NCBI GenBank assembly: GCA_002269645.1
Contig: NIVC01000063.1
Span: 89,649-153,648, forward strand
Source: Macrostomum lignano
Taxonomy: Eukaryota
Direction: 5' to 3'
DNA length: 64,000 nt
A program made the translations under genes and the position numbers. Below the pieces are notes generated by a model that worked only from the letters and a program-made list of their open reading frames with translations, was not told where the DNA came from and did not search any database. This document shows, piece after piece, positions 2,163 to 55,547 of this stretch; the stretch's first letter is position 1, and every line of letters begins with the position of its first letter.

Positions 2163-5100
2163 AAACTACTGGCGAGCTCGTTCTCCGAGAAGCACCTGAC
2201 AGTTGAAATTCGAAGGCGCTACGGAGCCGTGGGAATTAATTCTCATTTGCTTCGCCAGCGGGGCGAGTTGAAACCAATCGAGGACCAAACCGAGTTTCGA
2301 ACGTTGCAGCTGCCCTATGATGATAAATGCGATTTTCCGGAGGTCGATGTGGCTCAATACGATTTGGAGTCTGACCTGGGCGCCCTGCCCTACCTGCTGG
2401 TGCAGCTGCGCTATGAGCCCCCCGACTCAGATCCGGGTTTGTTGGGCACTCTGGGGATTGAGCACTCTGGGGATTGAGCGCTCTGGGAATTGAGCACTCT
2501 GGGGATTGAGTGCTCTGGGAATTGAGCACTCTGGGGATTGAGCACTCTGGGGATTGAGCGCTCTGGAAATTGAGCACTCTGGGGATTGAGCACTCTGGGG
2601 ATTGAGCACTCTGGGAATTGAGCGCTCTGGGAATTGAGCACTCTGGGGATCGAGCACTCTACAAGGGTTGAGCACTCTGGGGATTGAGCACTCTGGGGAT
2701 TGAGCGCTCTGGGAATTGAGCACTCTGGGGATTGAGTGCTCTGGGAATTGAGCACTCTGGGAATTGAGCACTCTAGGGATTGAGAACTCTAAACGGGTTG
2801 AGCACTCTGGGGATTGAGCACTCTGTGGATTGAGCACTCTAAGGATTGAGAACTCTGAGGATTGAGCACTCCTGCAATTGAGCATTATGTATCAACTCAC
2901 TTATGCCCATCATCCGCAGTAATTCTCGGCTGGGCCAGAGTGACCCCCTACGAGCGCCTTAGCAACGGTCAGTTCGACGCTGTCAAGCGATTCCGCATCA
3001 CGTGCCCGATTTATCCCGGACACCTGCCGGACGATCCGCTCGGCTGGCAGCCCGGGGAGCTGCCGGACTTTGACGGTGGGATATAATGGAAGAAGGGGAA
3101 AGGAAAGATAAGGGGAACATGATGGAGAATAAAGGGATGGGAAGAAAGGATCGGATTGAGGAAATGTGATCAGGAAGGGAAATGCGATCAGGATGGGGAA
3201 TGGGATCAGGATGGGAAATGGGATCAGGATGGGAAATGAGATCAGGATGGGGAATGGGATCAGGATGGAAAATGGGATCAGGATGGAAATGGGATCAGGA
3301 TGGGAAATAGGATCAGGATGGGAAATGGGATCAGGATGGGGAATGGGATCAGGATGGGAAATGGGATCAGGATGGGGAATGGGATCAGGATGGAAAATGG
3401 GATCAGGATGGGAAATGGGATCAGGATGGGAAATGGGATCAGGATGGGAAATGGGATCAGGATGGGAAATGGGATCAGGATGGGAAATGGGATCAGGATG
3501 GGAAATGGGATCAGGATGGGAAATGGGATCAGGATGGGGAATGGGATCAGGAAGGGAAATGGGATCAGGATGGGGAATGGGATCAGGATGGGAAATGAGA
3601 TTAGGATGGGAAATAGGATCAGGATGGGAAATGGGATCAGGATGGGGAATGGGATCAGGATGGGAAATGGGATCAGGATGGGAAAAGGGATCAGAATGGG
3701 AAATGGGATCAGGATAAGAAATGAGACATGAGGAAGGTAGGAATAGGTGTGAATATGATCAGGTAGACAGGAGAGAAAGATAATCGTAGGTAGAGACAAA
3801 AGGTGAGAGGTAGACAAGAATGGAAAGATTCAGTCAGGCATTTTCTCACCGTGTTGTAGAAGACGACCCAGAAGAGCGGCAGCAGGCAGCGGATTACAGG
3901 GACGGCTTAGTGAATGGTGAGCGACCACTGCTGCATTGCTGTTTGTCGAAACGTGAATGGTGGGATCTCTAATTAGGGATTCATACCTTGAATGATGGGA
4001 TCTCTAATTAGGGATTCATACCTTGAATGGTGGGATCTCTAATTAGGGATTCATACCTTGAATGATGGGATCTCTAATTAAGGATTCATACCTTGAATGA
4101 TGGGATCTCTAATTGGGGATTCATACCTTGAATGATGGGATCTCTAATTAGGGATTCATACCTTGAATGATGGGATCTCTAATTAGGGATTCATACCTTG
4201 AATGATGGGATCTCTAATTAGGGATTCATACCTTGAATGATGGGATCTCTAATTAGGGATTCATACCTTGAATGATGGGATCTCTAATTAGGGATTCATA
4301 CCTTGAATGATGGGATCTCTAATTAGGGATTCACCTAAATGACAATAAATGATAAATGAATGATGACAAACCGGCTATAAAAAATCATTCCCAGCCTACC
4401 TGGGCGACTTCTCCGAGATCAGCTTGCACGGCTACCCCATCGGCGAGTCCCCCAGCCCGCTGGTGATTCTGCCGCCGCCTCAAAAAGAGCCCGCCAAGGA
4501 GAAGACTCCCAGCCCGCTGCCACCGCCTCCGGAGACCCCGCCGCCTGCGGAGGAGCCCGAGTGAGCCATAACTGACCCCCACTGATTCCCCCATTGACCC
4601 CCTCATTGCCTCCCTCGTTGACTCCCCCATTGACTCTCCCATTGACTCTCTCATTGACTCCCCCATTGACTCCCCTATTGACTCCCCTATTGACTCCCCC
4701 ATTGACTCCCTCAATGCCTCCCCCATTGACTCCCCCATTGACCCCCCCATTGACTCTGTCGTTGACTCCGTCATTGACTCCCCCCACCCCAGACTGACTC
4801 CTAGATAGCTCCCTCATCAATCCCCCATCAATCACTCAATAATTCCTCCTTAATCCCCATAGGTTACTCCTTAATCCCTCACCAATCCCTCATTAAAATC
4901 TCTCCTCTCCGCCCTCCCAGGCCGGTCCGACAGCCAAAGAACATACCCAGGCGGCATTGGACGATTCACGACCCCGCCATCGAGAAGACCTACCCGCAAG
5001 CCACTGCCACGAATCAGCCTTTCGACGTGTACATCGACCAGATTCGGTACATGTTCGATGGAATCACTATTGTGAAGGTGAGGAACTGCGTTAATTGATC

Positions 5101-8100
5101 TAATTCATTTGATTGACCTTAATTGACCTCCTAGCATCGACAATGTCAACAACGCTTGACCTCAGTTGACCTCAGTATCTAAATAGATTGACTGACCTCA
5201 GTTGACCTCAGTATCTAAATAGATATATATCTAAATAGATATATATATCTAAATAGATTGATATATATAATATATATCTAAATAGATTGACTGACCTCAG
5301 TTGACCTCAGTATCTAAATAGATTGATTGACCTCATTTGACCTCAGTATCTAAATAGATTGATTGACCTCAGTTGACCCCAAGTATCAATACATCTAAAT
5401 AGACTTTTTACCTCAGTTGATTCCAGTTTATAAATGTTTTGGCTGACCTTATTTGACCTCCTCGACCTCGACTTCGCAGCTCACCGGCAGATTTTTAAAC
5501 ACGGGCCACGACACGGAGATCCCAGACATCCTGCTGGTCCCAAATCCCAAGCTATCGCCAAGAAATTTAAATTTCTTTGCTGGCCAGCGGGTTCAGATTA
5601 CCGCATCCGACGCGATGAACCTCGGCAAGGACAGCGCGCTGGTGATCAGGGTGTACACTTTGATCAAGCCAGATCTGGAAATGGTGGTGGTTGGAACCTG
5701 CGTGCTGCCGATATTCGACAATAAGGTGCGTGCAATTGGGCTGTCTGGTAGATTCTGGTGGATTTTAGTGCAGTCTGGTAGGTTCTGGTAGATTTTAGTG
5801 CAGTCTGGTAGCTTCTGGTAGATTTAAGTGCAGTGTGGTAGGTTCTGGTAGATTTGAGTGCAGTCTGGTAGGTTCTGGTAGATTTGAGTGCAGTCTGGTA
5901 GCTTCTGGTAGATTTAAGTGCAGTCTGGTAGGCTCTGGTAGATTTGAGTGCAGTCTGGTAGGTTCTGGTAGATTTGAGTGCAGTCTGGTAGGTTCTGGTA
6001 GATTTGAGTGCAGTCTGGTAGGTTCTGGTGGATTTGAGTGCAGTCTGGTAGGTTTTGGTAGATTTGAGTGCAGTCTGGTAGGTTCTGTTAGGTTTGAGTG
6101 CCGTCTGGTAGGTTCTGGTAGATTTGAGTGCAGTCTGGTAGGTTTTGATAAATTTGAGTTCAGTATCGTAGATTCTGTCTGGTAGATTTGAGTGCAGTCT
6201 GGTAGGTTTTATGAGTGTCTTGTAAGTTTTATCAGCGTCTGGTAGGTTTAATCAGTGACTGGTAGGTTTATCAGTGTCTGGCTCGGGATTGAACCAGTGG
6301 GGGCAAACGAACGGTTTTATTGATCAACCCACAGGGTCGCCTACTCACCGGCGGTCATCAGCTCCGGCTTCGAGAGCACGCCTCCATGGTGGCAGCGGGC
6401 CAGCAGCGGGCCTCTCTCGCCACCAGCTTGGACTCCATCAAGCAGGCCAAGTCTCTGCCCTGCGTGACCGGCTTGTTCCGCCTGCTCCCGCAAAGTGCTC
6501 GGCCAATCGACGCTCCGGACTACACCAGCGGCTACTATCGCTCTGAGGAGTGCCGGCCAACGGACGCTGAGCTGCGAGTATTTCGCGAGCACGACAGATA
6601 CGAGAGCTACCCGGAGACGTTCGCCCCGTTGGTTAACTATGTGCAGAGCCAGGACACTGTGAAAGTGGCCGCCAATGACTATAACCAGGTGTGTTGCAAC
6701 TCTGTTGATAAATCTTGTCACTCTGTTGATTATCCCTGTCACTCTAATGTTGATAAATCTTGTCACTCTAATGTTGATAAATCTTGTCACTCTAATGTTG
6801 ATAAATCTTGTCACTCTAATGTTGATAAATCTTGTCACTCTAATGTTGATAAATCTTGTCACTCTAATGTTGATAAATCTTGTCACTTTAATGTTGATTA
6901 ATCTTGTCACTCTAATGTTGATAAATATTGTCACTCTACTGTTGATAAATCTTGTCACTCTACTGTTGATAAATCTTGTCACTCTAATGTTAATAAATCT
7001 TGTCACTCTAATGTTGATAAATCTTGTCACTCTAATGTTGATAAATCTTGTCACTCTAATGTTGATAAATCTTGTCACTCTAATGTTGATAAATCTTGTC
7101 ACTCTTTTGATGATTGATCTTGTCACTCTTTTGATGATAAATCTTGTCACTTTAATGTTGATTAATCTTGTCACTTTAATGTTGATTAATCTTGTCACTC
7201 TAATGTTGATAAATCTTGTCACTCTACTGTTGATAAATCTTGTCACTCTAATGTTAATAAATCTTGTCACTCTAATGTTGATAAATCTTGTCACTCTAAT
7301 GTTGATAAATCTTGTCACTCTAATGTTGATAAATCTTGTCACTCTAATGTTGATAAATCTTGTCACTCTAATGTTGATAAATCTTTGTCACTCTACTGTT
7401 GATCAATCTTGTCTCTCTAATAAATATTCTTGATGTTACTCCAACAAAAGGTGATGGCCTACGTTCCGACTCGAATGGACCCGGCAAGGTGCCTGCCGCC
7501 CAACACGGCCCCGAGAGCGATGCCGCAGGAGCTGCACTTTCACTATCGGGACTTGTCCGGCGCCTTCGTCCGGCTTGAGGCCGCCTACGGATTGCCGAAG
7601 CCGAATTCGGCAGCTTCGGCTGATCTCATTTTTGGCGTTCTCATGACCATCGTCGGGGCCAAGAAGCTGGAATCCTTGCCTAGCAAAGCTCTGGGCATCG
7701 GCTTTGATACCATGGCCGTGTTTGTGCAGTCTGGTAGGGGCTGGGGTGACCTACTAACCCTACACTGTCTAGTAGGGCTGGGGTGACCTACTAACCCTAC
7801 ACTGTCTAGTAGGGCTGGGGTGACCTACTAACCCTACACTGTCTAGTAGGGCTGGGGTGACCTACTAACCCTACACTGTCTAGTAGGGCTGGGGTGACCT
7901 ACTAACCCTACACTGTCTAGTAGGGCTGGGGTGACCTACTAACCCTACACTGTCTAGTAGGGCTGGGGTGACCTACTAACCCTACACTGTCTAGTAGGGC
8001 TGGGGTGACCTACTAACCCTACACTGTCTAGTAGGGCTGGGGTGACCTACTAACCCTACACTGTCTAGTAGGGCTGGGGTGACCTACTAACCCTACACTG

Positions 8101-11100
8101 TCTAGTAGGGCTGGGGTGACCTACTAACCCTACACTGTCTAGTAGGGCTGGGGTGACCTACTAACCCTACACTGTCTAGTAGGGCTGGGGTGACCTACTA
8201 ACCCTACACTGTCTAGTAGGGCTGGGGTGACCTACTAACCCTACACTGTCTAGTAGGGCTGGGGTGACCTACTAACCCTACACTGTCTAGTAGGGCTGGG
8301 GTGACTTACTAACCCTACACTGTCTAGTAGGGCTGGGGTGACCTACTAACCCTACACTGTCTAGTAGGGCTGGGGTGACCTACTAACCCTACACTGTCTA
8401 GTAGGGCTGGGGTGACTGTCTGGTAGACACTGTCTAGTAGGGCTGGGGTGACTCTCTGGTGGACACTGTCTAGTAGGGCTGGGGCGACTGTCTAGTGGAC
8501 ACTGTCTAGTAGGGCTGGGGTGACCTACTAACCCTACACTGTCTAGTAGGGCTGGGGTGACTGTCTGGTAGACACTGTCTAGTAGGGCTGGGGTGACTGT
8601 CTAGTAGACACTGTCTAGTAGGGCTGGGGTGACTGTTTGGTAGACACTGTCTAGTAGGGCTGGGGTGACTGTCTAGTAGACACTGTCTAGTAGGGCTGGG
8701 GTGGCTGTCTGGTAGACACTGTCAAGTAGGGCTGGGGCGACTGTCTGGCAGTGTCTCGTAAGGGACTGCTCAGGGCCAGAAGACTCAGGTAGCCAACCCC
8801 ACCTCCGCCCCACCCCAGGCGCCGGCAGGTTCACCCGCCGGGCGGAGCAGCTGAACCCGCGGTCGGACCCAGCCAACACCCTGCTTGTGCAGTTCTTCCG
8901 CCTGCCCGGAGTTGCCCATCGCGACGGCAAGCTCTTCGAGGGCGAGCAGGAAGTGACGGAGCTGAAGAAAGATCATTTTGTTGCCTGGGCCGTGTGCCCG
9001 CTGTTGAACCAGTGAGCAACTTGATATAACTGACTATTTTTGAGTATAAACAAGTGATTATTCAGTAATTTGTTCACCCACTGACTCAGGGAGTACACCT
9101 ACAATGGCCGTCACCGGGTGCCCGTGTTCAGCCAGTCCGACTTGCCGCTGACCACCAACAGAGTGCGCACCATCCGCTCTCGGGGCCTGACTGGCGCGCT
9201 CAAGGTTGACGGCGCGCTGGCCACCCATGTGGTACGCTTGGGGCGATTCTGGGGGGCGATTCTGGGGGGCGATTCTTGGGGGGATTCTTGGGGGGATTCT
9301 TGGGGGGATTCTTGGGGGATTCTTGAGGGGGATTCTTGGGGGGATTCTTGGGGATTCTTGGGGGGGTTCTTGGGGGGTTCTTGGGGGATTCTTGGGGGGA
9401 TTCTTGGGGGGATTCTTGGGGGGGATTCTTGGGGGGATTCTTGGGGGGATTCTTCGGGGGGATTCTTAGGGGATTCTTGGAAGGGATTCTTGGAAGGGAT
9501 TCTTGGGGGATTCTTGGGGGTTCTTGGGAGGGATTCTTGGGGGGTTCTTGGGGGGTTCTTGGGGGGGGTTCTTGGGGGATTCTTGGGGGATTCTTGGGGG
9601 GATTCTTTGGGGGGTTCTTGGGGGTTTCTTAGGGGGGTTCTTGGGGGGGGTTCTTGGGGGATTCTTGGGGGGATTCTTGGGGGGGATTCTTGGGGGGATT
9701 CTTGGGGGGATTCTTAGGGGGGATTCTTAGGGGATTCTTGGAAGGGATTCTTGGAAGGGATTCTTGGGGGGATTCTTGGGGGGTTCTTGGGAGGGGGGTC
9801 GAAGCTTGGGAAGGGGCGATTCTTGGGAAGGGGCGCTTCTTGGGAAGGGGCGCTTCTTGGGAAGGGGCGCTTCTTGGGAAGGGGCGCTTCTTGGGAAGGG
9901 GCGATTCTTGGGGGCGATTTTCATGGGTAGCAATTTTGGGAGCAATTCTTGGAGGCGATTGTTGAGGGGGTGATTTCTCGGGGCGATTTTTCGGTGGGCG
10001 ATTACCGGAGGTAATTTTTCGTTGGGACGATTTTCGACGGGCTGAGCGTAGCGGATTTTTGGCGGAATGATTCCGAAAGATCGGCACTCAGAAAGGATGT
10101 TGGCTCCCGGAAGTTCCCAACTAAAATTTATCATTCTTCTGACACAAATATTTGACTGCTTTGTGACAACAGGCAACCAGCAGCGCTCTGCTATCGGTGG
10201 TCGACGGTCACCTGAGCTACAAGGAGGCTCCAGAAAACGCAAAGGTATGCGCAGAGCTTATGGCCGTCCTTATTGAATTAGTAGTGTAATTAAAACGATT
10301 CGAATCCCCGCCCACAAACAGATTCACACCTCTGTGTACGAGCACCTGCCCAAGACCACAGCGGCTGACTATCAACCTGCGATCGACTCTGCTCAGCTTG
10401 AGCAGTCCAGTTTCGGTCAGAATTGTCAGGAAGCCATCGAAAATGCGATTGTGAGATTCCTGCTGAATATCCTACTGAGCACTCTACCTCTCCCTGCCTC
10501 CCACTCTGCACCCTACCTCTCCCTGTCTCCCTCTCTGCACCCTACCTCTCCCTGTCTCCCTCTCTGCACTCTACCTCTCACTGCCTCCCTCTCTGACCCC
10601 TACCTCTCCCTGTCTCCCTCTCTGCACTCTACCTCTCACTGCCTCCCTCTCTGCATCCTAACTCTCACTGCCTCCCTCTCTGCACTCTACCTCTCACTGC
10701 CTCCCTATCTGCATCCTAACTCTCACTGCCTCCCTCTCTGCACTCTACCTCTCACTGCCTCCCTCTCTGCATCCTAACTCTCACTGCCTCCCTCTCTGCA
10801 CTCTACCTCTCACTGCCTCCCTCTCTGCACTCTACCTCTCACTGCCTCCCTCTCTGCATCCTAACTCTCACTGCCTCCCTCTCTGCATCCTAACTCTCAC
10901 TGCCTCCCTCTCTGCATCCTACCTCTCCCTGTCTCCCTGCCTCCTTTTCTGCACCCTACCTCTCACTGCCTCCCTCTCTGCACCCTACTTCACCGTCTCC
11001 CTGATTAAATAAGGATAAATTCCCGAACGCTGAGTCCATAATTAACAAATCGTAAACATATTTTCAGAGCGGCACAAAGCGCAATCAGTACCAGCCTCTG

Positions 11101-12189: not shown

Positions 12190-15100
12190 TCAAAGCGCAG
12201 CAGCAGCACCGCTTCGATTCCACCGCCACCCGTCGCCGCGAACTCTCGCATTCCTCGCCCGCATCCGAGCTCTGTGCCGCTGGATGCCTCCTTCAACTAC
12301 TCGATTCAAAGCGGCCAGCTGTGGATTCTTGACACTTCTTGGCGGCCCCCGTCTGGCCGTTGGCTGCCGGGATCTGGCTGACCAGCTCAGCTGATTGGCA
12401 CCAGTTCCAGCTACCGTCACCGACATTGGGACAGCAACAGCACCCGCGATCGCGACTGTGTCGTCTTCTACCGCGTCAGCGTCGTTAGCAACCGTTTCTA
12501 TAGCAACAGAGTTGACGACTGCTTCGGGCGTTACAGTGGCGGTTGACTTCGAGTTGCACAGCAGAATTATGGGCCTGACGATTGTGCACCAGCAAATGCA
12601 GGACAGCACGATAGCTGACAGCAGTGCAAGGGAAGCTGCGGTCAGTGCTTGGACCAGCGATGGAGTGGAGCTTGAGACGCTAGCAGGGGAATTTTGCGGT
12701 TCTGATGTTGCCGGCTGGGCTGTTGCTTGTTGCTCCGTTGTTTGCATATTTGGTGTTGCTTTTGACTGTGTTTGCGATGTTTGTGAGGCTATTGATTGTG
12801 ACGTTGGCTGTCCTGATGTGAGTTGCGGTGTTGTTGGTTGTGCTGTTGTTGGTTGCGCTGTTGTTGGTTGTGCTGTTGTTGGTTGTGCTGTTGTTAGTTG
12901 TGATGTTGTTGGTTGCGATGTTGTTGGTTGTGCTGTTGTTGGTTGCGATGTTGTTGGTTGCGCTGTTGTTGGTTGTGCTGTTGTTGGTTGCGCTGTTGTT
13001 GGTTGTGCTGTTGTTGGTTGTGCTGTTGTTAGTTGTGATGTTGTTGGTTGCGATGTTGTTGGTTGTGCTGTTGTTGGTTGCGATGTTGTTGGTTGCGCTG
13101 TTGTTGGTTGTGCTGTTGTTGGTTGTGACGTTGTTGGTTGTGCTGTTGTTGGTTGCGATGTTGTTGGTTGCGCTGTTGTTGGTTGTGCTGTTGTTGGTTG
13201 TGCTGTTGTTGGTTGTGCTGTTGTTGGTTGCGCTGTTGTTGGTTGTGCTGTTGTTGGTTGTGCTGTTGTTGGTTGTGCTGTTGTTGATTGTGCTGTTGTT
13301 GGTTGTGCTGTTGTTAGTTGTGCTGTTGTTGGTTGTGACGTTGTTGGTTGCGATGTTGTTGGTTGTGCTGTTGTTGGTTGTGCTGTTGTTAGTTGTGCTG
13401 TTGTTGGTTGTGCTGTTGTTAGTTGTGCTGTTGTTGGTTGTGCTGTTGTTGGTTGTGACGTTGTTGGTTGTGCTGTTGTTGGTTGCGCTGTTGTTGGTTG
13501 TGCTGTTGTTGGTTGTGCTGTTGTTAGTTGTGATGTTGTTGGTTGCGATGTTGTTGGTTGTGCTGTTGTTGGTTGCGATGTTGTTGGTTGCGCTGTTGTT
13601 GGTTGTGCTGTTGTTGGTTGCGCTGTTGTTGGTTGTGCTGTTGTTGGTTGTGCTGTTGTTAGTTGTGATGTTGTTGGTTGCGATGTTGTTGGTTGTGCTG
13701 TTGTTGGTTGCGATGTTGTTGGTTGCGCTGTTGTTGGTTGTGACGTTGTTGGTTGCGATGTTGTTGGTTGTGCTGTTGTTGGTTGTGATGTTGTTGGTTG
13801 CGCTGTTGTTGGTTGTGCTGTTGTTGGTTGTGACGTTGTTGGTTGCGATGTTGTTGGTTGTGCTGTTGTTGGTTGTGCTGTTGTTGGTTGTGCTGTTGTT
13901 AGTTGTGATGTTGTTGGTTGCGATGTTGTTGGTTGTGCTGTTGTTGGTTGCGATGTTGTTGGTTGCGATGTTGTTGGTTGTGCTGTTGTTGGTTGTACTG
14001 TTGTTAGTTGTGATGTTGTTGGTTGCGATGTTGTTGGTTGCGATGTTGTTCGTTGTGATGTTGCAGGTTGTGATGTTGTTGGTTGTGATGTTGTTGGTTG
14101 TACTGTTGTTGGTTGTGATGTTGTTGGTTGTGATGTTGTTGGTTGTACTGTTGTTGGTTGTGATGTTGCTGGTTGTGTTGTTGCTGGTTGTGATGTTGGT
14201 TGTGATGCTGTTAGTTGCGCTGTTGTTGGTTGTGCTGTTGTTGGTTGTGATGTTGTTGGTTGTACTGTTGTTGGTTGTGATGTTGGTTGGGATGTTGTTG
14301 GTTGTGCCGTTGTTGTTTGTAATGCTGCTGGTTGTGTTGTTGCTGATTGTGATGTTGGTTGTGATGTTGTTAGTTGCGATGTTGTTGGTTGCGGTGTTCT
14401 TGATTGTGCTGTTGTTGGTTGTACTATTTTTGGTTGTGCTGTTGTTGGTTGTGTTGTTGCTGGTTGTGATGTTGCTGGTTGTGCTGTTGTTGGTTGTGCT
14501 GTTGTTGGTTGTGATGCTGCTGGTTGTGTTGTTGCTGTTTGTGATGTTGGTTGTGATGTTGTTAGTTGCGCTGTTGTTGGTTGCGGTGTTGTTGATTGTG
14601 CTGTTGTTGGTTGTGTTGCTGCTGGTTGTGATGTTGTTGGTTGTGCTGTTGCTGGTTTTGCTGTTGTTGGTTGTGATGTTGTTGGTTGTGACGTTGTTTG
14701 TTGCGCTGTTGTTGGTTGTGCTGTTGTTGGTTGTGACGTTGTTTGTTGCGCTGTTGTTGGTTGTGCTGTTGTTGGTTGTGAAATTGTTGGTTGTGATGTT
14801 GTTGGTTGTACTGTTGTTGGTTGTCTTGTTATTAATGTTTGCTTTGTTGTTGGTTGCATGGTTGGTAGTGTCGTCGATTGTTTTGTTGGTTGCATTGTTA
14901 ACTGTTTGTCAGTTGTTCGCTGCGCTGTTGCTATGAGTGTTATCGTTGCTCTTAATTGCTGCGTTATTGTGTGTGGATCTGTTGTTCGTGACGTCGTTGA
15001 TGAATCCGCTGATGCTCCTGATGTTGTTTTTAGATTTATCGTTTTTCCTGGCATTGTCAGTCGATTTGTTGTTACCCCTGTTGTTGTCAGTGGATGTGTT

Positions 15101-16068
15101 GTTGCCCTCGTTGTCGGTGGATCTGTTGTTGACCTCGTTGTTGTCCTCGTTGTTGTCAGTGGATCTGTTGTTGTCCTCGTTGTTGTCAGTGGATCTGTTG
15201 TTGTCCTCGTTGTTGTCAGTGGATCTGTTGTTGTCCTTGTTGTTGTCAGTGGATCTGTTGTTGTCCTTGTTGTTGTCAGTGGATATGTTGTTTCCCCCAT
15301 TGTTGTTAGCCGATCTGTTGTTTCCCCCATTGTTGTTAGCCGATCTGTTGTTTCCCCCATTGTTGTTAGCCGATCTGTTGTTGCTCCTGATGTTGTTAGT
15401 GGAGCTGCAGTGACCAGCAAATGTGTAGTCGGCGGTACTCTTAATTGCGTTTCTGCTGCTAATTGAGACGTTGTACTTAGCGCAGTATTAGATGCTGTAC
15501 TGGCTACTGCAATCGGCTCATCAGTAGTATCCTTTGCGCTGGTTACGACATCCGAAATAGTTGTGGAAAATAATCCTGGAGCGTTGACAGTCGCTGGATG
15601 CAAACCACTTTCAGTAGTTGTCGGGACAGCATTATCGCGTAGAGCAGTTGTCTGTTGGGCCGTGGTGATCTGCTCTAAAATTATGTGGAAATAATTAATA
15701 CAGATATTACAGTGATATTACAGCCTTTGGCGTTATCATTCTTCAAACAGGCTGCAGCACGCACTCGTGCACACGCTCACACGGGGTGCACAGTGGCCCT
15801 TAGTTTAATCTGTGCTCGTGGGTGCAATCGATGGGGTCCGTGGCGCGATAAATCATTTTTGGGGGGTTTCGGCCATAGACAATTTGGACTCAAAGAAAAG
15901 CGAGATCTACACTTCTTAACACAAAAAAGGAAATGATAGATGCCTAAAGGATAAATCAGATATTTTATGCAACGTATAACATACTAACGGCATCATCACT
16001 AATTACGACTATTCAGTTCGACTATTTCAACTCACCTGTTGACCCGGCCTCGAGAGTAGCTGGCGCAG
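12190..16068 (-). CDS. Type I transmembrane mucin-like protein (QPTT[A/S] repeats); 5' exon(s) unresolved
   Basis: Large exon 12190-15674 (acceptor tttag) plus a small phase-1 exon 16036-16068 (caacag...gtgagt). Thr/Pro/Gln-rich ectodomain with well over 100 pentapeptide repeats, a single hydrophobic segment (LTAASLALLSAIVLSCICWCTIV) and a basic cytoplasmic tail. No signal-peptide exon identified. Confidence 0.8.
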
Positions 16069-16609
16069 CTGTTGCACAGTTGAAATAGGAGGCAAAGAAA
16101 ACAATGAAGCCTATAATTAGTGCATTATTAGCCACTGTTGTACCTACTAATTGCATAATCCTATTGACAAAGACCTTACTGTCTGCATGCAAACTAGATT
16201 TTGCGGCCCAGTCTCTGGACTATAACCGTGACAGACCTAATATAAATGTTAGGAATCAAGAACTTCACCTTTGTGAACATTTTCCGTTGCTAAGCAACCC
16301 TTCAAAGCCATTCTATTCTATACAGCTAGATAAGATGCGGTCGCCATGACAACAAACAAAAATACGAAAGGAAACTGATTTAATTGCTCGACATCAGTGG
16401 CAAGCGCGGGTCTCAAATGCAAATATTCAGCTGGGCTATTGAATAGTGCGAGTTTGCCATGCATAATGCATGCGATAACCTCGCCTGCTTCCTGCTGTGA
16501 GCTGTCACCCACTATTGGTCTGGAGTTCTTTCTTAGAAATGCACCGGAAATTATCGTGTGTTTCTTAATATAGCATACAGAATTACAGATCAATGAGCAT
16601 TTGAGAAGT

Positions 16610-17405
16610 GGATTTTGAGAAACCGGTAATGTAGATTTTAGAAATCGGTAATGTGGATTTGAGAAACCGGTAATGTGGATTTGAGAAACCGGTAATGTGG
16701 ATTTGAGAAACCGGTAATGGGGATTTGAGAAACCGGTAATGTGGATTTGAGAAACCGGTAATGAGGACTTTAGAAATCGGTAGAGGATTTGAGAAACCGG
16801 TAATGAGGATTTGAGAAATCGGTAATGTGGATTTGAGAAACCGGTAATGTGGATTTGAGAAACCGGTAATGGGGATTTGAGAAACCGGTAATGTGGATTT
16901 GAGAAACCGGTAATGGGGATTTGAGAAACCGGTAATGTGGATTTGAGAAACCGGTAATGGGGATTTGAGAAACCGGTAATGTGGATTTGAGAAACCGGTA
17001 ATGAGGACTTTAGAAATCGGTAGAGGATTTGAGAAACCGGTAATGAGGATTTGAGAAATCGGTAATGTGGATTTGAGAAACCGGTAATGTGGATTTGAGA
17101 AACCGGTAATGGGGATTTGAGAAACCGGTAATGTGGATTTGAGAAACCGGTAATGGGGATTTGAGAAACCGGTAATGTGGATTTGAGAAACCGGTAATGG
17201 GGATTTGAGAAACCGGTAATGTGGATTTGAGAAACCGGTAATGGGGATTTGAGAAACCGGTAATGTGGATTTGAGAAACCGGTAATGGGGATTTGAGAAA
17301 CCGGTAATGTGGATTTGAGAAACCGGTAATGGGGATTTGAGAAACCGGTAATGAAGATTTGAGAAATCGCTAAAATGGATTTGAGAAACGAGGATTTAAG
17401 AAATC
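16610..17405. repeat. 22-bp minisatellite (gatttgagaaaccggtaatgtg) with an internal ~240-bp higher-order duplication
   Basis: About 36 units. The variant block gaggactttagaaatcggtagagg occurs near 16763 and again near 17003. Confidence 0.95.
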
Positions 17406-18261
17406 GGTAATAAGGATAAAGAATAGAGGAAAAAAGCCGACAAAACACCTTAACAATTAAATGTAGCACTCTGTCAGAGTCCACAACATGTCGACACCGA
17501 GACAGACGCACTGAATTGACATTGATCAGGTGCCACTGATCATATACAATTTCAATGCATCAAATGTGCAGAAATAGGCATGTATATTTATATATTTAGA
17601 AATGTGTAAATTTATGATTATTAATTAATAACTTACATAAACTGCGCCAAACCAAAGCGAATTTACAAATTGTTTTTTTTTGTTTGAATTCACAACAAAT
17701 TTGGATTCTAAATTTTTTAATTAACACATTGGTGCATGCATATGCGCGGATAAATGAAAGCTAAATAAACACACAAAAAGCACAGGTTAGCATACTAACA
17801 GATACAGGCTACTTATAGTAAGGTGATACAATATAATTACAAACAGTGCTGATTAGTTAATAAATAATAATTCAGCAATTGTAGGGCTAGTGAATTATTA
17901 CGAGTTATTGAACAAACGAACAAACAAACAAACAAGGTGACGAGTAGGCAATCAGAGGAGGGAATTCAGAATCAAGCAAGTTAGGTAAATAGATGTGAAA
18001 TAAAAATTGGAATAGGGGCAGGTGAAAAAAAAACAATGAATTATCGAATTACTACTAGAGTTACAGTCGGTACTAAGTAGTATGTTTTAATTGCTTTTTT
18101 AATGAAACTGATTTTTCAAGTTACTAACTAGTAATTGTTACCAATATTATTATTATTACTACTACTTTACAAAAAAGCGTTGGATTATAAAATTGGAGAC
18201 AGAACGCAACAAGTTCAATTTTCAATTCAGGAGTCACTGCACAGCCAAGGACAAGCATTTT

Positions 18262-20039
18262 TTACTTTTTACCAGGCGGCTGCTGCGGCTGGGAGGCGGC
18301 GCTCATAGCCGACCAGAGGCTGGTGGGATTAAATCCCATATTTTGTCGCATAGCCTGCTGCAGCATAGTCAAATAGTTAGCCGGCATAGTGTAGGGATAA
18401 GAGCTGGCGCTGGCGCCTCCGGCAGCCGGGTATAGCTGGGATATGGCCTGCAGCTGGGCGTGCAGGAACTGCTGGCGTTGAATCTGTTCAACAGCGGCTG
18501 CGGTGGCGGCAGCCTGAGAAGCGGCGGCGGCAGCGGCGGCCTGCTGCTGCTGCTGCTGCTGAGTGGTGGCAGCAAGGCGGCTGGCACTGGAGCCCGAGAG
18601 GCTGTGCAACGAACTGGATGACCTGTGCGCAGAGCTTAGCGAAGACATGCCATGCAGAGAATGATGCTGCTGCTGGTGATGATGCTGCTGCTGATGCTGC
18701 TGAGCCTGAGGCTGAGGCGGCGGCGGAAGCAGATGCGGAAAAGCTTGAGCAGCCAGCTGCGGATTAGCCGAATAGCGTTTGAATTCTTTTTCAATTTCTT
18801 CCTCTTGTTTGAGCGCTTTAACAAAAGCGGCCTTGAGCCTGGCCGTGTGATCCTTGCGAATGGCGTTCTTCTGATTGACGGACACGCACTGTTCGCAGAT
18901 GACATTCTTAGAGCCGGGCTTGTCCCGCTTCCACACAGGTGTATAGTCTGTGCCGCACTGCACACAGGTGAACGGGTGGAATACGTACTTGACTTCGGTT
19001 GGCTTGCCGCCCTTCAGTACGGCATCGTATTCGCTGATATTGCGGACAACTTCCTCTAGGCCTACTAGAGCAATGAACTCGTTAGTAACCGTGCTCGGTA
19101 TGAAGTTCAACTCAGACGGCGGCGGCTGGGGATTGGGAATCTCCAGCAGGGATTTCTCCAACTGTTTGCGCAACGCCAGCTTCTTCTGAGCCTTCTGGGC
19201 GTCTAGCTGAGCCTGGCTAATCTGTGGCGGCGGCGGCGGCGTAGCTTTCGTAGTGGAAGCCTGGCCGCTGCTGACGCTGGCCGACGTTTTCATTGGCAGC
19301 GCGGCGGCCGACTGCGACCGGCCAATTGCCGAAGATGGCGACTGATGATGCGACAGCTTCTGGCTGCCGACAGCCGCTGCGCCAGCGGAACGGCCTTGAG
19401 CTGCAGCTGAGGCGCCCGACCGACTGGCACCAGATTGAGTGGCTCCAGCGACGGCGCCATTCTCCTTCTGTTGCTGATGATGGAGACTGGAGCCGGGCGC
19501 CGAGGCGGATCTCTGCTGAGAATGGCGCATAGCCTTCAATAGGGCCAGTTTGCACTCTTCGCTGCGCAGACTTTCGCGTAGTTTACGCAGCACCACGGCC
19601 TGCTCCTTCACCAGGGCCATGGCGGCGTCTGAATCAATGTCAGATTCGGCTAGCTCAGCCTGCTTAGCAACTAGCTTCTGGATTTCCTGCTCTTCATCGT
19701 CTGGCAGCACAATGATCTCATCGCTGCCAGCAGTTGCAGCGCTAGCAGCAGCGGGGGCAGAAGCAGCAAGGCTGCCAGTTCCACCAGAACTTGTCAGGGC
19801 GGGCGCTTTCTTTCGGCTAAGATCCATGGGCGCCAAGCCGACTTGAGAAGAAGACTCAGTAGAGTTAGACGAAGCAGCAGCAGCAGCAGCAGCAGCCGCT
19901 TTCGAACGTTTCAACAGCACATCGGAGGTCTCGGGCAGTAGCCGTTTCCGTTGTTGCTGAGCAGCGGGCTGCATTGCTTTAATAGTTTTAGCTGTTGCTA
20001 CTAATGCTGATTCTGTTGAACACTTCTTGATTGGCGACA
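18262..20039 (-). CDS. GATAD2: Transcriptional repressor p66 / GATAD2 (NuRD subunit), main coding exon
   Basis: CR1 coiled coil (VLRKLRESLRSEECKLALLKAMRHSQ). CR2 with LEKSLLEIPNPQPP...FIALVGLEEVV and GATA-type finger CVQCGTDYTPVWK...ICEQC, followed by HTARLKAAFVKALKQEEEIE. PMDLS CtBP-type motif. The exon begins at a strong acceptor (ctgactaattcaacatttcag) in phase 1. Confidence 0.93.
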
Positions 20040-20189
20040 CTGAAATGTTGAATTAGTCAGATAACACGGGCGCTAATTACAGGGAAATAATTAAACTCTG
20101 GCCATAGACAATTAGACTCTGTGTATACAGTACATAGAACTGCTAGCAGTACAAAATAAATGAATTTTAATAAGCAAACTTATGACAGT

Positions 20190-20458
20190 CCCTAACCAAT
20201 CTATCTACTCGTATCTATCTACCTATCTATTTATGTATCTGTCTATTATATATGTTGTATGTATGTATCTATTGTATCTGTGTATCTATCTGTCTATTAT
20301 CTATGTTGTATGTATGTATCTATTGTATCTGTGTATCTATCTGTCTATTATCTATAAATGTATGTATCTATGTAATCTATGTATGTATGTATCTATCTAT
20401 CTATAATCTATCTATCTATCATCTATCTACCTATCTATCTATTTATGTATCTATCTTT
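20190..20458. repeat. (tatc/tatg)n microsatellite
   Basis: Imperfect tetranucleotide run between the THAP ORF and the GATAD2 exon. Confidence 0.9.
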
Positions 20459-20552
20459 CGCCAAAACTCAAGAATGAAATTGATTTATATTAATTTTGCT
20501 GTTAAGACCTGTCAAGGCTGTTGTTTTCAGCTTACTTTAAGAACTTAACAAT

Positions 20553-20879
20553 TTACAATGATTTCGATTTACCAATCTCGCTAACCAAATCATTGTACTC
20601 TTTTAGACGCAGATGCCCATTGCCGATTTTATCCGGACTAGTCCAGGAGAACAGCCAAGGCGCATAGTCCACGTGATTCGGATCGTTAACCGGGGCCCCG
20701 GTTAAAAAGTGACAATCGCACACCCGCGAATTCGGATTGGGCTGCCACGGCTCGCCGCGGCGCAGCGCCACTATCCATTTCTGTCGCCTGGCCGGCGGTC
20801 CAACCGGTATGCGAAACATTTTCGGCATACCGGCACCGCCGCCCCTGCGTTTACAGTTGACTACGCAACAGCTGGGCAT
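20553..20879 (-). CDS. Stand-alone THAP (C2CH zinc finger) domain ORF, 108 aa; possibly exon 1 of the GATAD2 transcript
   Basis: MPSCCVVNC...MFRIP...RRQKWIVALRR...WQPNPNSRVCDCHF...DYAPWLF retains the C-x-C, W, C-x-x-H-F and AVPTIF-box-equivalent positions of THAP. No transposase catalytic domain follows. Confidence 0.88.
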   Translation of the reverse strand: MPSCCVVNCKRRGGGAGMPKMFRIPVGPPARRQKWIVALRRGEPWQPNPNSRVCDCHFLTGAPVNDPNHVDYAPWLFSWTSPDKIGNGHLRLKEYNDLVSEIGKSKSL

Positions 20880-21583
20880 GCCGCGGGAATATTGTATTGA
20901 GACCACAGAGCACCCTGGCTGCGACAGGTAGCCCAGGTTGAAATAATGGAGGCACAGGGCCAGATCATGATGGAGAGGAGAGAAGTAAAGAGGGGGAGGC
21001 AGACAGTCACACTAAGGGAAGAAGAGGGAAGAGACAAGCCATCTACCACCCCCCATAGGCGTCCGTCCGGTTTTTTTCAAAGCTAAAATTTCTCGTCCCT
21101 CTGCATCCAAGGTGAGTCTGACACTGCTTCTGCCAGCGAAGCTCTCTACTCGGTGAGCACACGCCATGAAGCCTCCCTCCCCTTCTCACCTTCCCCAGGT
21201 CTGCTCTCCCCTCCTTTCCCGGCTCAAACCCACATATCCTGCCCAATTTCTCTGTATCATCTGGCTCAATCTCTTGCCTGCCTATCACCTGTGTCCCGGC
21301 TCCAATTGATTTTTTTTGCAAACCGTAGACCACCTACCTCACTTTCTAGCCAGATATTCTCAGGACTAGCAATAGGGGAAGAGGAAAGACAGGAAAAATA
21401 CTATAATCCTCTTTCCTATTTTTCACTGTCAATGCCAAAACAGGAGGAATAGGAAAGGACAGGGATAGCTTTTAAAGTTATACAAAGCCCCAGCAAGAGA
21501 CATCTGGATTCTGAACAAAACAAAGAAACGACTGGGATTCTTCAGTGGAAGCTTTTAGAAAACTCCCTACCATGCTTGGGCGC

Positions 21584-21731
21584 AACCTAGGGATTCACCC
21601 GGCCGTTTCTATTGGCAACACACACATGTAAGTCGCTATTGGACGGAATAGTACTCACGTGACTGCTCTTAGCTAATAGCGACTTACATGTGCGCGTTGC
21701 CATTAGAAACGGCCAGGTGATTCCCAAGGTT
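21584..21731. repeat. Long imperfect inverted repeat (57-bp arms, 34-nt loop)
   Basis: cacccggccgtttctattggcaacacacacatgtaagtcgctatt (21596-21640) pairs with aatagcgacttacatgtgcgcgttgccattagaaacggccaggtg (21675-21719) with 4 mismatches; pairing extends about 12 bp further out. Confidence 0.9.
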
Positions 21732-22124
21732 AGGGTTAGGAGTCCCTACTTACAGAAAACAAACTGAAACTGGCAAGACGGACTATTCTTGGGGCAGTAA
21801 TTGCTAACATTATTCACTGGATGCGGGCTTAACAGTAAATGATGATATTAACACAACCACAATGAGGACGCAACACAAAGAATTTAAGACATGAAGGAAA
21901 GACAGACTAGACAAGAGTATGACAAAATCCAACCCTTCCACCCTATCTTTTTATAAAGTAATTGGAAGAGAAAGTAGAAATAGTTTAAACGATTGTTAGT
22001 AGAAACCAGAAAAATTGTTAGTAGAAAAGAACTCTTTTAAGCTACTGAGCTTAAGCTACTAATCGTCTTCAAATTTGACGCAAACAATCTTCAACTATTT
22101 TAAGACAATCGTGTAAAATTTCGA

Positions 22125-23160
22125 GGCTTAAAGTTAATTCTGAACGGCACTGTGTACTTTTAAAGTTAGTCTGATTTTGTCAGCGTAGCAACCACCTCAA
22201 CCTCCGCCTCTCTCCTTGCCTTATTTGGCGAGATATGGAAAAGGAGTTTTAAAATTGACTAAACTTTGGCGCTGCTATAAGTTTGCTTCACATAAATGAT
22301 TGACTTCAAACTTGACAAAATACTTCATTGACTCATTCACTGTCATATCTCTAAATGTAAAGTCTCAGCTCTGTAACTCTGTTTTTTGCCTAGATGTTTT
22401 TGCCGCTCATTCATTCCCCCAAGAGGAAGGGGTCGGGCGATAGGGCTCAGTGAACATAGATGTGCTGTGTTGTGGAATAACTTTAGTTATATAGCCTTCT
22501 TTGCAAGAGACTATGTTTAGCCATGACAGTTTAGTGAGAAATTCTTAACACTTGGCCTATTCTATAAAGCCACCATAAGATAAGTTTGTTCTTAGCTCCT
22601 ATCTCCACAGTGTAAAAGTTCCAACGTACAATTGAACTTATGCTACAACAGCTTTATAGTACAACTACAACCCCTCTGTACTACTATCTGATTGAGAGAC
22701 AAGAGTATTCTGTGCCACAAACTGGCTTTTGAAGCAACTTCAGCTCACACTAAAGGATCTGCACTGAAAAAAATATCTTAACATTAATAAGTATTATCCT
22801 GATACTCTATTTTAAATTTTCACAACATTCTAATCATCAATCATATGAACTTTTAAATGATGTCAGAACACAAAGGCTTAGGGACATGGCTTTTAAGGTT
22901 GTAAATATACTTAAAGACATGGCAAATTATAACAGTCAATACTTAATACTAAGTGGCATTGCATTTCTTATATCTTTAACTTACCTGACATAATTGTATA
23001 AAAATGTGCATCTTAAAGAGTATCTTGAAAGACACTGAAAACTTTTAAATTTAGTGTATTTTTGCCATTGAGACAACCACTGTAATCTCCATCTACCTCT
23101 TTTTCCCTTATCTGGCCAGATATATACACAAGGGTTTTAAAATTGACTAACTTATGGCTA
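22125..23160. repeat. Diverged direct duplication of ~140 bp (about 22125-22270 and 23015-23160)
   Basis: Shared blocks acttttaaa.ttagt...caaccac...ccttat.tgg..agatat...gttttaaaattgactaa. Confidence 0.55.
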
Positions 23161-29685: not shown

Positions 29686-47913
<18,228 letters not shown>

Positions 47914-51855: not shown

Positions 51856-54800
51856 TCAAGCGGTTCTAAAAAAACTGGCGGCGTGCTCTGTTGACGGCTG
51901 CTGCTGCTGCTGTTGAGACGACTGGTCGTCGATTGTGAATGGCGACAGACGGGGCCAAACTGGGTCGCCGCCCAGGCCGCCAAACAGGCGACTGCCGCCG
52001 AACACGCCTCCGCCACCGCCATTGCTGCTGTAGAAACTGCTGCCGCTGCTGCTGCTACCGCCAAATAATTGCTGCTGTTGTTGTTGCTGCTGTTCCTGCT
52101 GAAGCCTCTGATGGCTCGACACGATGGCCGGGTCCGACCAGAGACCAGGCGGCGGCAGCGGATTCAGCGCCGACGCTTTAGAAGCGGCAACTGGCGAGGA
52201 AATCACGCCAGTGCCAGACATTGGCGAACTGGCACTGGGCACGAATCGGTGCCCGCCGCCAACAGCAGACGATAGAGACTGGGGCGGCCGACCGGACCCG
52301 ATGTAGCCAAACATTGAAGTTGGCGCCGCTGAAGCTGGCGAGCCGGCGCCGGGAGCGAACAGAGCGCTTTGATTATTAGAAGCTGCCTGACCCTCGTAGC
52401 TAATATTAGCATTGGGAAATAAACTTCTCAACGTCTGCGCTAAATGACGAACATCAGTTTCTAGCGATGGCTGTTGCTGCTGCTGCTGAAGATGAAATAA
52501 CCCCGGCGGCGGTGCCAATGTTGAGGAGGACGCTGGAACCCGACTAACCTGCTGGTGCTGCTGCTGAAGATGATTCTGGTGCTGCGGTGAGGACAGGCCA
52601 GGCTGATGATGCTGATAAAAGCCAGGCGGGGCCTGATGATGCTGCTGGTGCATAGCCTTCTGCTGCTGTTCGTATTGCAGGCACTCGCTTAATCCCCTCT
52701 GCGACTCGCTAAACGGATCAAAGTCCAAATCGTCGCAAGAGAAAGCTGTCGCTGGTGCCGGCGCTGCTGTAGCCCCTACTCTCAATGATGATGGAGATGA
52801 TGAAGAGCCCGGAGCAGCTGAGCCGGATCCCACAGCCAGACTGGTTGAAGGCGGCGGAGGAGCCGGCGCCAGAGACAGATGCTTTGGCGACGCTGGCGAA
52901 GCCGCGTGTGACGAAGGCAGCGGCGCTGGAACGATCGACCCCAAAGAGGCTGCGCCATTGAACGAATAGCCGCCCAAGCCGCCGCCAATACCGCCAAATA
53001 TCTGATGGGGAAGGTGCTGCATAGAACTACTAACAGTAGTAGCTGATTCAGAAACCACCGCAACAGACGAAGTTACTGATGATGAAGAAGGGGGAGCTAT
53101 AGCTGTGGAACCTGCTGACACTGGTGATTCTCCTCTGGTTCGCTGGCTCTGCTGTTGCTGATGCCTATGAGCCTGAGAAGTGTCCTGAGTACTGCTGGAA
53201 ACATGCCTAGGCTGTGGATGAGGAGCCTGCTGCTGTTGCTTGCCAGTTTTCTCGCCGCCATTTGAACCGCCACAGGCTGCCGCTGCCGCGGCGGCAGCTG
53301 CTTTTTTCGAAGCTTTCTTGCTGGATTTGCTTGAAGTAGCGCCGCCGCCGCCGCCGCCACCAGAAGCGGCAGCGCCAGCTCCGGATGATGACGTCCCGGA
53401 GGCTGCAGCGGCAGCATTGGCCGCCTGCTTCTGATTATGATTGGCTGAGCTTTTCTTTTGATTACTTAGAAATTGCTGCACCAATCGCTCCTCAAACTCG
53501 TTGTGCTTGCCGGCGTTCATTTCTTCTTTAGTAAAACTGGCATTGGGATCGCCAAGTTCGTGCAGGTACATGCAGTCAGGCTTAGGACACGTGTGACCCT
53601 TCAAATACGAGCTGCAATACTTAGTAGTGCCTAGCGACGCTTTCAACATCCGCCTATCAATCTCTGTATTGCGCAAGTCCAACAGAGCTCGAATAGCGTC
53701 CTCAGATTTATAAAAGGTCACGTAGGCGCCAAACGAAGCCTGACTGTTGGACCCGCCGCCGCCGACATTGGTTGGCCTGGACAGGGCGATCTTGTACACC
53801 CGGCCGTACTTACCGAAGTACTCGGCGCCGCGAAGCACGTCGGCGTCAGCTAGACGAGCTGGTAGGCCGATGACAAACACCAGATTGTGTTGGACAACTC
53901 GGACTTCGTTTAGCGATCGCTTATTAACATTGTCAGTTGTTTTCTGTTGCTGTTTGCGAGCCTGCTCCTTCATTTTCTTAGTTCTGCGAATCTTCATTAT
54001 TCTGAAATTGACGCAGATTGTCAACGTTTGGATAGCGATTTATAATCTACAACAAGACAAAAATAAAAATTCAAGTATCGATTCCGATTCAATTCTTAAA
54101 TAGCGCTTTAGATCCCTAAATCTCACGGTTCAGATTCTGAATCTCGTGATTTAGGTCAGAAATCTCACGATTAAGATTCTGAATCTCGTGATTTAGGTCA
54201 GAAACCTCACGATTAAGATTCTGAATCTCGTGATTTAGATCAGAAATCTCACGATTCAGATTCAGAATCTTGTGATTTAGGTCAGAAATCTCTGGATTAA
54301 GATTTTGAATCTCATGATTTAGGTCGAAATCTAACGATTAAGATTCTTAGTGTCACGATTTAGGTCAGACATCTCAAGGTTCAGATTCTGAATCTCGTGA
54401 TTTAGGTCAGAAATCTCTGGATTAAGATTCTGAATCTCATGATTTAGGTTAGAAATCTCTGGATTAAGATTCTGAATCTCGTGATTTAGGTCAGAAATCT
54501 CTGGATTAAGATTCTGAATCTCATGATTTAGGTTAGAAATTTCTGGATTAAGATTCTGAATCTCGTGATTTAGGTCAGAAATTTCTGGATTAAGATTCTG
54601 AATCTCGTGATTTAGGTCAGAAATCTCTGGATTAAGATTCTGAATCTCATGATTTAGGTTAGAAATTTCTGGATTAAGATTCTGAATCTCGTGATTTAGG
54701 TCAGAAATTTCTGGATTAAGATTCTGAATCTCGTGATTTAGGTCAGAAATCTCTGGATTAAGATTCTGAATCTCATGATTTAGGTTAGAAATCTCTGGAT

Positions 54801-55547
54801 TAAGATTCTGAATCTCATGATTTAGGTCAGAAATCTAACGATTAAGATTCTGAATCTCGTGATTTAGGTCAGAAATTTCTGGATTAAGATTCTGAATGTC
54901 ACGACTTAGGTCAGACATCTCACGATTCAGATTTTGAATCTCATGATTTAGGTTAGAAATCTCTGGATTAAGATTCTGAATCTCATGATTTAGGTCAGAA
55001 ATGTCCCGATTCAGATTCTAAATCTTCAAGATTAAGATTCCAAGCTCATCAGGATTCGCATTGGCGCTCTCACAACTGTGACCCCCAATTCTCAATAACA
55101 AGATTCTGATAGGGATAAACTGCGCCTAAAAAAGACAACAAATTAGTCACGTTGAAAACTGACTTACTCTTCCTCCGTCAATGGTTTAAATGACGCCGGC
55201 TGCTCTGAATTGTACGCCTGATTGGGACAATTACAAGCAGTAGTTTTTTTACAATTTAATAACCTGAATGCCGAGTAATCAAAAATATCGATTAAACTGC
55301 TTACATTCCGACAAGCTGGACAAAGACCATTCCCTTCGTCTAAGATTTTAGTCCAACAGAATCGACAGATCTGACAAATGTATAGAATAGTTTGCAATAT
55401 AAATTTAACTACAAAATATTAGACACACTGGGCAGGTTGGTTACAACAAATTACCTGATACTCGCATGGACACGGATAGAACGCCAGATCATCAAAATCT
55501 AAGGGTTCCATGCACAGCGGACACTCTGATTGGTCATCGTCGGCCAT
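51856..55547 (-). CDS. CNOT4: CCR4-NOT subunit 4, E3 ubiquitin ligase
   Basis: Exons 55455-55547 (in-frame alternative ATG at 55556), 55305-55370, 55168-55217, 51856-54001, all phase-consistent. C4C4 RING (CPLC..CPCEYQICRFC..CPAC), coiled coil, RRM (VRVVQHNLVFVIGL..YFGKYG), C3H1 finger (TTKYCSSYLKGHTCPKPDCMYLHE) and CAF40-binding-type motif DDLDFDPF. Confidence 0.95.
54118..55030. repeat. 42-bp intronic minisatellite made of two diverged 21-mers (gattaagattctgaatctcgtgatttaggtcagaaatctctg)
   Basis: About 21 units in CNOT4 intron 3. Confidence 0.95.

Follow-up and report, generated by a model that had tools for sequence, protein, structure and literature searches.

A THAP zinc-finger reading frame directly upstream of a canonical p66/GATAD2 gene in Macrostomum lignano

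In the Macrostomum lignano genome, a reading frame for a THAP zinc finger lies 0.5 kb upstream of a gene for the NuRD subunit p66/GATAD2. The window analyzed here is a 64-kb stretch of contig NIVC01000063.1; all coordinates are in its numbering, and both reading frames are on its minus strand. The original prediction for this locus was that the THAP domain is fused to p66 by splicing, or is transcribed together with it. We lean, with some hesitation, toward separate THAP and p66 products, with a THAP-p66 fusion protein being at most a minor one. The downstream unit is best explained as a canonical p66/GATAD2 gene, with a protein that begins at ATG 19974 and a 65-nt leader whose 5′ end is a 3′ splice site of ordinary appearance.

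The p66 coding sequence (18262-19974) is a single exon of 570 codons and a stop. It has 91 homologues (best E=9e-67, best identity 43%), which point to a spiralian affinity and no more closely than that. Identity to named p66 proteins is local, at 57-76% over 18-26% of the query, and the block involved is taken to be the region around CR2. The other conserved element, the CR1 coiled coil, lies at 19459-19608 and matches P66_CC (PF16563) with 33.1 bits against a cut-off of 26.4. In characterized p66 proteins, CR1 binds MBD2/3. CR2 is a GATA-type zinc finger (CVQCGTDYTPVWKR...CEQC) at 18865-18966 that aligns to the fingers of GATA1. Its Pfam GATA score of 24.6 bits is just below the cut-off of 26.8, and GATA is also marked weak in those p66 homologues whose loci were retrieved. 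Canonical GATAD2A/B (p66alpha/beta) share CR1, CR2 and an N-terminal KR...KRxK pattern with the window p66. For the protein from ATG 19974 there is no difference from that family, and the THAP open reading frame (ORF) is the sole extra feature.

Ten homologues with complete N-termini (from Lineus, Owenia, Lottia and several gastropods) begin with a Met, followed by 5-8 residues, a KR motif and then KRxK. The window sequence 'MQPAAQQQRKRLLPE...LKRSK' fits this pattern column for column, with ATG 19974 as the Met. On this alignment, ATG 19974 is the predicted p66 start, conserved and ancestral. The 21-22 codons between the acceptor and Met 19974 have no counterpart in any homologue. Those 21 codons have a GC content of 0.37 and a GC content at third codon positions (GC3) of 0.19, compared with a GC3 of 0.46-0.76 in the p66 coding sequence and a GC content of 0.29-0.31 in flanking non-coding DNA. 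The linker thus lacks a coding-type composition, a result softened by the low GC3 of the THAP tail (see below). Judged on frames, composition and the N-terminal alignment, the 65 nt from acceptor to ATG (19975-20039) may be either 5′ untranslated region (UTR) or a young linker.

The acceptor itself is a credible splice site. A CTGAC branch-like motif at 20060-20056 is followed by 'caacatttcag' ending at 20040, and the cag at 20042-20040 is in phase 1, as originally described. Its pyrimidine fraction is 0.6, and six acceptors inferred elsewhere in the window range from 0.45 to 0.65. Because Met 19974 is conserved and the 21-22 codons before it look non-coding, the site is most simply part of the 5′UTR of an ordinary p66 mRNA. 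The CNOT4 gene in the window is arranged likewise, with an acceptor 36 nt ahead of its ATG.

The THAP ORF (20553-20879; ATG at 20879-20877, TAA at 20555-20553) is intact, with 108 codons and a stop, and lies where the original prediction had placed it, on the same strand as the p66 exon. Its zinc-finger core, residues 1-80 (20640-20879), was delimited by Pfam, invariant columns, AlphaFold2 and PDB fold matches. Against the Pfam THAP family (PF05485) it scores 38.2 bits (cut-off 23.9; E=2.5e-9). When 1.84 billion proteins were scanned exhaustively with HMMER, 1033 relatives came out at E<=1e-3. The nearest are about 50% identical or less, with tick and abalone among the named ones, and p66 is absent from the best 150. 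A word-based protein search with the THAP ORF returned no relatives. In public assemblies, neither the THAP ORF nor p66 from ATG 19974 had an exact match.

When aligned with its 39 nearest relatives, the THAP ORF keeps C4, C9, P25, W35, C54, H57, F58 and P74, all of them invariant or >=90% conserved columns among the 40 sequences. The C2CH signature C-x2-4-C-x35-53-C-x2-H is present, with C4/C5, C9, C54 and H57 as ligands. The AlphaFold2 model has a pLDDT of about 90 over residues 1-78. Meaningful PDB fold matches of this model are those at ranks 1-5 only (THAP2, THAP1-DNA, the C. elegans CtBP THAP and the P-element THAP), with query-normalised TM-scores of 0.33-0.54 and E-values of 1e-2 or weaker, as expected when the domain is small. 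By sequence, the best PDB match is 2jm3, the CtBP THAP domain. The THAP ORF is far beyond chance, and its predicted product is a DNA-binding zinc finger of the THAP family.

Homology to the relatives runs beyond the finger and into a helix (residues 82-102, 20574-20636). The helix is seen in the phmmer alignments, which reach query residues 93-105, and in a low-confidence part of the AlphaFold2 model, which extends it over residues 82-105. Its 'LRLKEY' matches an L-x-[RK]-Y motif conserved in relatives. The homology fades at about residue 100, and the ORF stops at codon 109, shortly after the helix. The ORF has the look of an N-terminal part taken from a longer THAP protein and severed just past the helix, and a truncated gene fragment fits because the tail homology stops where it does. 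HTH_Tnp_4 was found in 5 of the 39 nearest relatives, and DDE_Tnp_4, the PIF/Harbinger-type transposase nuclease, in 3 of them. The kinship with P-element-type transposases originally pointed out thus holds in the generic sense that applies to THAP domains, but the nearest relatives are often joined to PIF/Harbinger-type transposases (DDE_Tnp_4).

We propose the following origin. A Harbinger-associated-type THAP gene may have reached the 5′ region of p66 through insertion or duplication, and would then have lost all sequence past the helix. The THAP ORF would now be translated alone, as a short DNA-binding-only protein. Its transcript might end in the spacer between the two ORFs, or might be spliced from a donor at 20535 to 20039 and carry p66 as 3′UTR. 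Canonical p66 would come from mRNAs in which the THAP exon is skipped, or whose 5′ end lies downstream of that exon. A THAP-p66 protein, made through a weak donor at 20572, would be at most a minor or young isoform.

A small DNA-binding THAP protein has parallels. The KP and 66-kDa repressors of the P element are truncated THAP-bearing proteins (PMC7776569), and like them the truncated N-terminal THAP module of the window may bind DNA alone. They differ in being encoded by the P element and in repressing their own transposase, whereas no cognate element is known for the window THAP. A P-element remnant was considered and rejected, as the window holds no transposase similarity anywhere and no inverted repeats beside the ORF.

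A quite improbable alternative is that the THAP ORF is an untranscribed relic, a recently inserted fragment of a transposase-type gene, or else that both ORFs are resolved from a single primary transcript by addition of a spliced leader (SL) at 20039. In favour of a relic, the ORF is shorter than its relatives by truncation, and these include Harbinger-type transposases. However, all 108 codons and all signature residues are intact, and codons 1-90 have a host-like coding composition, with a GC3 of 0.6-0.8. No terminal inverted repeats flank the ORF, and neither a transposase remnant nor a second DNA copy of the ORF turned up in the window, so that the multicopy transposon remnant against which the original prediction had warned was not encountered within the 64 kb. 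Acceptor-like sites occur 30-140 nt ahead of the ATGs of other genes in the window, as expected in an organism that uses trans-splicing. On the other side, scans of the window with Rfam and for tRNA genes found nothing, neither an SL RNA nor any other Rfam family.

THAP-only units do occur in this genome. One such gene, with two exons, occupies 37288-36330 of the minus strand and is antisense to the adenylate-cyclase gene within which it lies. The donor of exon 1 (...LALPNQPT) is ACA|GTGAGT, a GA-rich minisatellite makes up the intron, and exon 2 carries a C-x2-H and 'PPSVF'. The spliced product matches Pfam THAP with E=1.7e-7, but its kinship with the THAP at 20879 is distant. No downstream partner exon is visible for this unit, which is why we count it as THAP-only, and its presence weakens the argument that a bare THAP domain needs a partner. 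THAP families are also greatly expanded in several lophotrochozoans (PMC10027918), which makes a chance adjacency of THAP and p66 credible.

The fusion itself would work as follows. The THAP exon would be an alternative 5′ coding exon, and a 20573>20039 splice would give a 694-aa NuRD scaffold subunit that carries a sequence-specific THAP finger, while ordinary p66 would come from transcripts without that exon. We regard this as plausible but less likely than separate products. The geometry required for it is present. A candidate phase-1 donor (ATTG/GTAAAT, that is, TTG|GTAAAT) has its GT at 20572-20571, after 102 THAP codons and one base, and fits the phase of the acceptor. The ORF on the p66 side extends to the acceptor and has 592 codons (18262-20040). 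Joining 20573 to 20039 leaves an open frame of 694 aa, one residue from the length of about 695 originally estimated, with the junction ...LVSEI-V-SPIKK... and a predicted peptide over the join of ...EYNDLVSEIVSPIK... The THAP ORF begins at its N-terminus with a natural 'MP..C' and lacks any effector part.

The spacer (20041-20552, 29% GC) also resembles an intron. It resembles confirmed introns of the window in size and, as had been noted earlier, in microsatellite content; an (ATCT)n microsatellite at 20199-20456 fills about half of the gap, and micro- and minisatellites are likewise present in those confirmed introns. Scans of its composition, repeats and transposase similarity revealed neither coding potential nor a transposase remnant in the spacer.

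Several of these observations weigh against separate products. The gap between THAP and p66 is 0.5 kb, compared with about 2.6-9 kb between other genes in the window. Since it is so short and half of it is microsatellite, a poly(A) site and a promoter for p66 alone would hardly fit into it. A promoter-like, GC-rich block is present upstream of THAP only (20880-21345, GC about 0.53-0.57); its composition, PWM (position weight matrix) scores and pyrimidine content give it candidate 5′UTR splice signals only. Unless trans-splicing is at work, acceptor 20040 must be served by a donor upstream, and its phase agrees with that of donor 20572. The 65 nt before ATG 19974 are open in the p66 frame only, with two stops in each of the other frames. 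The THAP tail has a GC3 of 0.25-0.4 despite being ancestral coding sequence, so the argument from linker composition is only suggestive. Lastly, two annotation pipelines have modelled a THAP-p66 fusion in Dreissena, discussed below.

The match in splicing frame can be put in perspective. Donor and acceptor phases would agree by chance in about 1/3 of cases, and by our estimate a sequence this rich in AT would stay open over 21 codons with a probability of about 0.2. With these values the splice compatibility is not far beyond chance, unlike the THAP ORF itself. A scan of the window for bacterial sigma-70 promoters and terminators gave chance-level results, with models that are not applicable to a eukaryote.

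Splice-site strength also argues against the fusion. Our reference set, defined within the window from conserved protein sequence, comprised eight donors along with five acceptors. Three CNOT4 introns, one intron and one more donor of the second THAP gene, and three donors and one acceptor of the adenylate cyclase gene were its sources. Donors were scored with a generic metazoan PWM, and with so small a sample the comparison is indicative only. The eight confirmed donors score 6.8-11.2 bits. The in-frame donor at 20572 scores 5.4 bits, which is below all eight and outside their range. The original prediction had called the donor at 20535-20534 (AAA|GTAAGC), 18 nt past the THAP stop, the stronger of the two, and at 7.8 bits it is indeed the best donor between THAP and p66; its GTAAGC hexamer is the one used by CNOT4 intron B. 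Candidate donors upstream of the THAP ATG, at 21189 (AAG|GTGAGA, 10.6 bits), 21337 and 21342, are stronger than both. A candidate acceptor with 100% pyrimidines ends at 21012. Given these strong upstream donors and the 21012 acceptor, the THAP exon could be internal, and either skipped or included.

Use of the 20535 donor would have consequences of its own. In a 20536>20039 mRNA the whole THAP ORF would stand ahead of p66, and its translation as a leader or upstream ORF would suppress p66, so that inclusion of the exon would lower p66 output and yield a THAP-only protein. We think this improbable as a mode of p66 control. The donor is the best available in the interval, as just described. Moreover, the THAP stop would lie 18 nt before the junction, for which the 50-nt exon-junction rule predicts no nonsense-mediated decay. 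However, under the scanning model almost no initiation would be left downstream of an ORF that has 108 codons and AUGs inside it. Such a transcript would amount to a THAP mRNA with a long 3′UTR, and the bicistronic THAP/p66 message once suggested for this donor is not expected to yield p66.

Related loci were compared as well. That p66 proteins usually lack THAP agrees with our search, in which THAP-bearing p66 made up a single 90%-identity cluster among 98 p66 homologues: Dreissena polymorpha XP_052278331.1 (isoform X1) and KAH3837039.1. The gene is on CM035918.1 (10001-20807 in the extracted locus; automated annotation). When we reconstructed the KAH3837039.1 model it had five exons with GT-AG at every junction, and the THAP domain was in exons 1-2. 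The exon 3 acceptor is 10 nt before the canonical p66 ATG ('..IIT-MDAPEG'). The locus is like the window in that THAP exons upstream of the canonical-ATG exon are joined to it in frame, and Dreissena also has an isoform X2 without THAP. It is unlike the window in that THAP is split over two exons, which are followed by two further small exons. As a parallel, Dreissena speaks for the fusion.

The parallel does not extend to ancestry. The THAP domain of Dreissena is unrelated to that of the window (BLASTP E=0.27), so there is no shared ancestry that could support a fusion in the window. At seven p66 loci of distant species (Mya, Mercenaria, Lineus and four further assemblies), no THAP was found upstream of p66 within up to 10 kb, the span being 3.5 kb at two of the seven because the contig ended. 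Mya arenaria shares the downstream ETF-alpha neighbour with the Dreissena p66 locus, yet has no THAP. Common ancestry of the two arrangements was rejected on the unrelated THAP domains and on the absence of THAP in Mya and Mercenaria. From these comparisons, the THAP-p66 arrangement would appear to have arisen, or at least to have been annotated, twice independently, and not to be ancestral. The intron positions of a Haliotis THAP relative differ from the position of the 20572 donor, a comparison that is uninformative. We found no paper on THAP-p66, which is known only from the automated Dreissena annotation.

Taken as a whole, the fusion originally proposed keeps its geometry, its domains and its in-frame option. 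Against it are the conserved start at 19974, the UTR-like 65 nt with their non-coding composition, a donor weaker than every confirmed one, and a THAP linkage that is not kept at the seven other loci, which come from distant species. The join is possible on paper. In the boldest form of the fusion reading, again plausible but less likely than not, a lineage-specific THAP finger akin to those of Harbinger-type transposases would have been captured as an alternative first coding exon of p66. A choice between donors 20572 and 20535, or exon skipping, would then switch the locus among THAP-p66, THAP alone and plain p66, and with the independent Dreissena case THAP-p66 would be a recurrent invention.

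A fusion of this kind would have a well-established precedent, and the one invoked originally stands. C. elegans CTBP-1a has a THAP domain and CTBP-1b has none (bioRxiv 10.1101/2020.06.09.143248); a passage of PMC8816384 cites Nicholas et al. 2008 for CTBP-1a's THAP domain. The likeness is that of an N-terminal THAP finger on a transcriptional corepressor with a second isoform that is THAP-less. The differences are that the partner is CtBP and not p66/NuRD, and that CTBP-1a is proven by cDNA and genetics while the join in the window is read from genomic DNA. Transposase-derived domains have been joined to host proteins elsewhere. Host-transposase fusion genes reportedly arise through 'transposase capture' (Cosby et al. 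2021). The phrase itself occurs in passages of PMC7776569 and PMC10027918. The window shares with such genes a transposase-type DNA-binding domain upstream of host exons, to which splicing could join it. It differs in that no flanking transposon remains were detected and in that the nearest relatives combine THAP with PIF/Harbinger DDE_Tnp_4.

The outcome matters for how NuRD might find its targets. Ordinarily NuRD depends on MBD2 or on partner transcription factors to reach DNA. If the fusion were true, a p66 that carries a sequence-specific THAP finger itself would offer a direct route of NuRD targeting, and p66 would be the second corepressor with a transposase-type DNA-binding domain, after the nematode THAP-CtBP. 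If two distant animals each had a THAP domain, unrelated to the other's, in frame ahead of the canonical p66 start, recurrent capture would be indicated. THAP-corepressor and host-transposase fusions are already known, so THAP-p66 would be new as a variant, if the fusion is real. If the ORFs are separate, as we tentatively prefer, we are dealing with an ordinary p66 gene that has a fragment of a THAP gene on its 5′ side, a common outcome in genomes with expanded THAP families.

Other features lie upstream of the THAP ORF. An out-of-frame ATG at 20966-20968 begins an ORF that ends at 20861 and runs across the start codon of THAP; in a transcript that begins 5′ of that ATG, it would reduce THAP translation. 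Some 700 nt farther upstream than the THAP ATG is an inverted repeat (21584-21731) with 57-nt arms and a 34-nt spacer that contains CACGTG. Its folding energy is -101 kcal/mol (z = -15.7). It occurs once in the window and adjoins two CCCTAA telomere-type units (21728-21740). It could be a foldback or MITE-like (miniature inverted-repeat transposable element) sequence, or a hairpin RNA. Farther into the AT-rich region upstream of THAP/p66 is a local dispersed repeat in two copies (22127-22270 and 23012-23158) with 71% identity.

CNOT4 and adenylate cyclase are two of the genes that supplied reference splice sites. CNOT4 (51856-55556, minus strand) encodes a RING, an RRM and a C3H finger and has three coding introns. 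A minisatellite with a 36-bp unit, at about 54140-55060, fills one of them, which is about 1.15 kb long. A candidate 5′UTR donor lies near 55895. The protein is about 55% identical to insect, vertebrate and mollusc homologues alike, with a best value of 57%. The membrane adenylate cyclase gene (29686-47315, plus strand) is multi-exon, with (TGTC)n and other satellites in its introns; its exon ends include 30213 (CAG|GTGAGG), 38437 (CTG|GTGAGG), 38794 (an acceptor) and 47291 (CAG|GTGCGT).

Mini- and microsatellites are very abundant in the window (2400-3800, 6300-7400, 9100-10800, 12190-15603, 16318-17511, 35337-35913 and 42084-45351), and they create long spurious ORFs on both strands. One of these ORFs, at 12190-15603 on the minus strand, may be a real mucin-like protein with T/S/P/Q repeats and a C-terminal hydrophobic segment. 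Another minus-strand ORF, at 251-1096, is rich in conserved-looking cysteines and by eye looks like a C-type-lectin-like exon.

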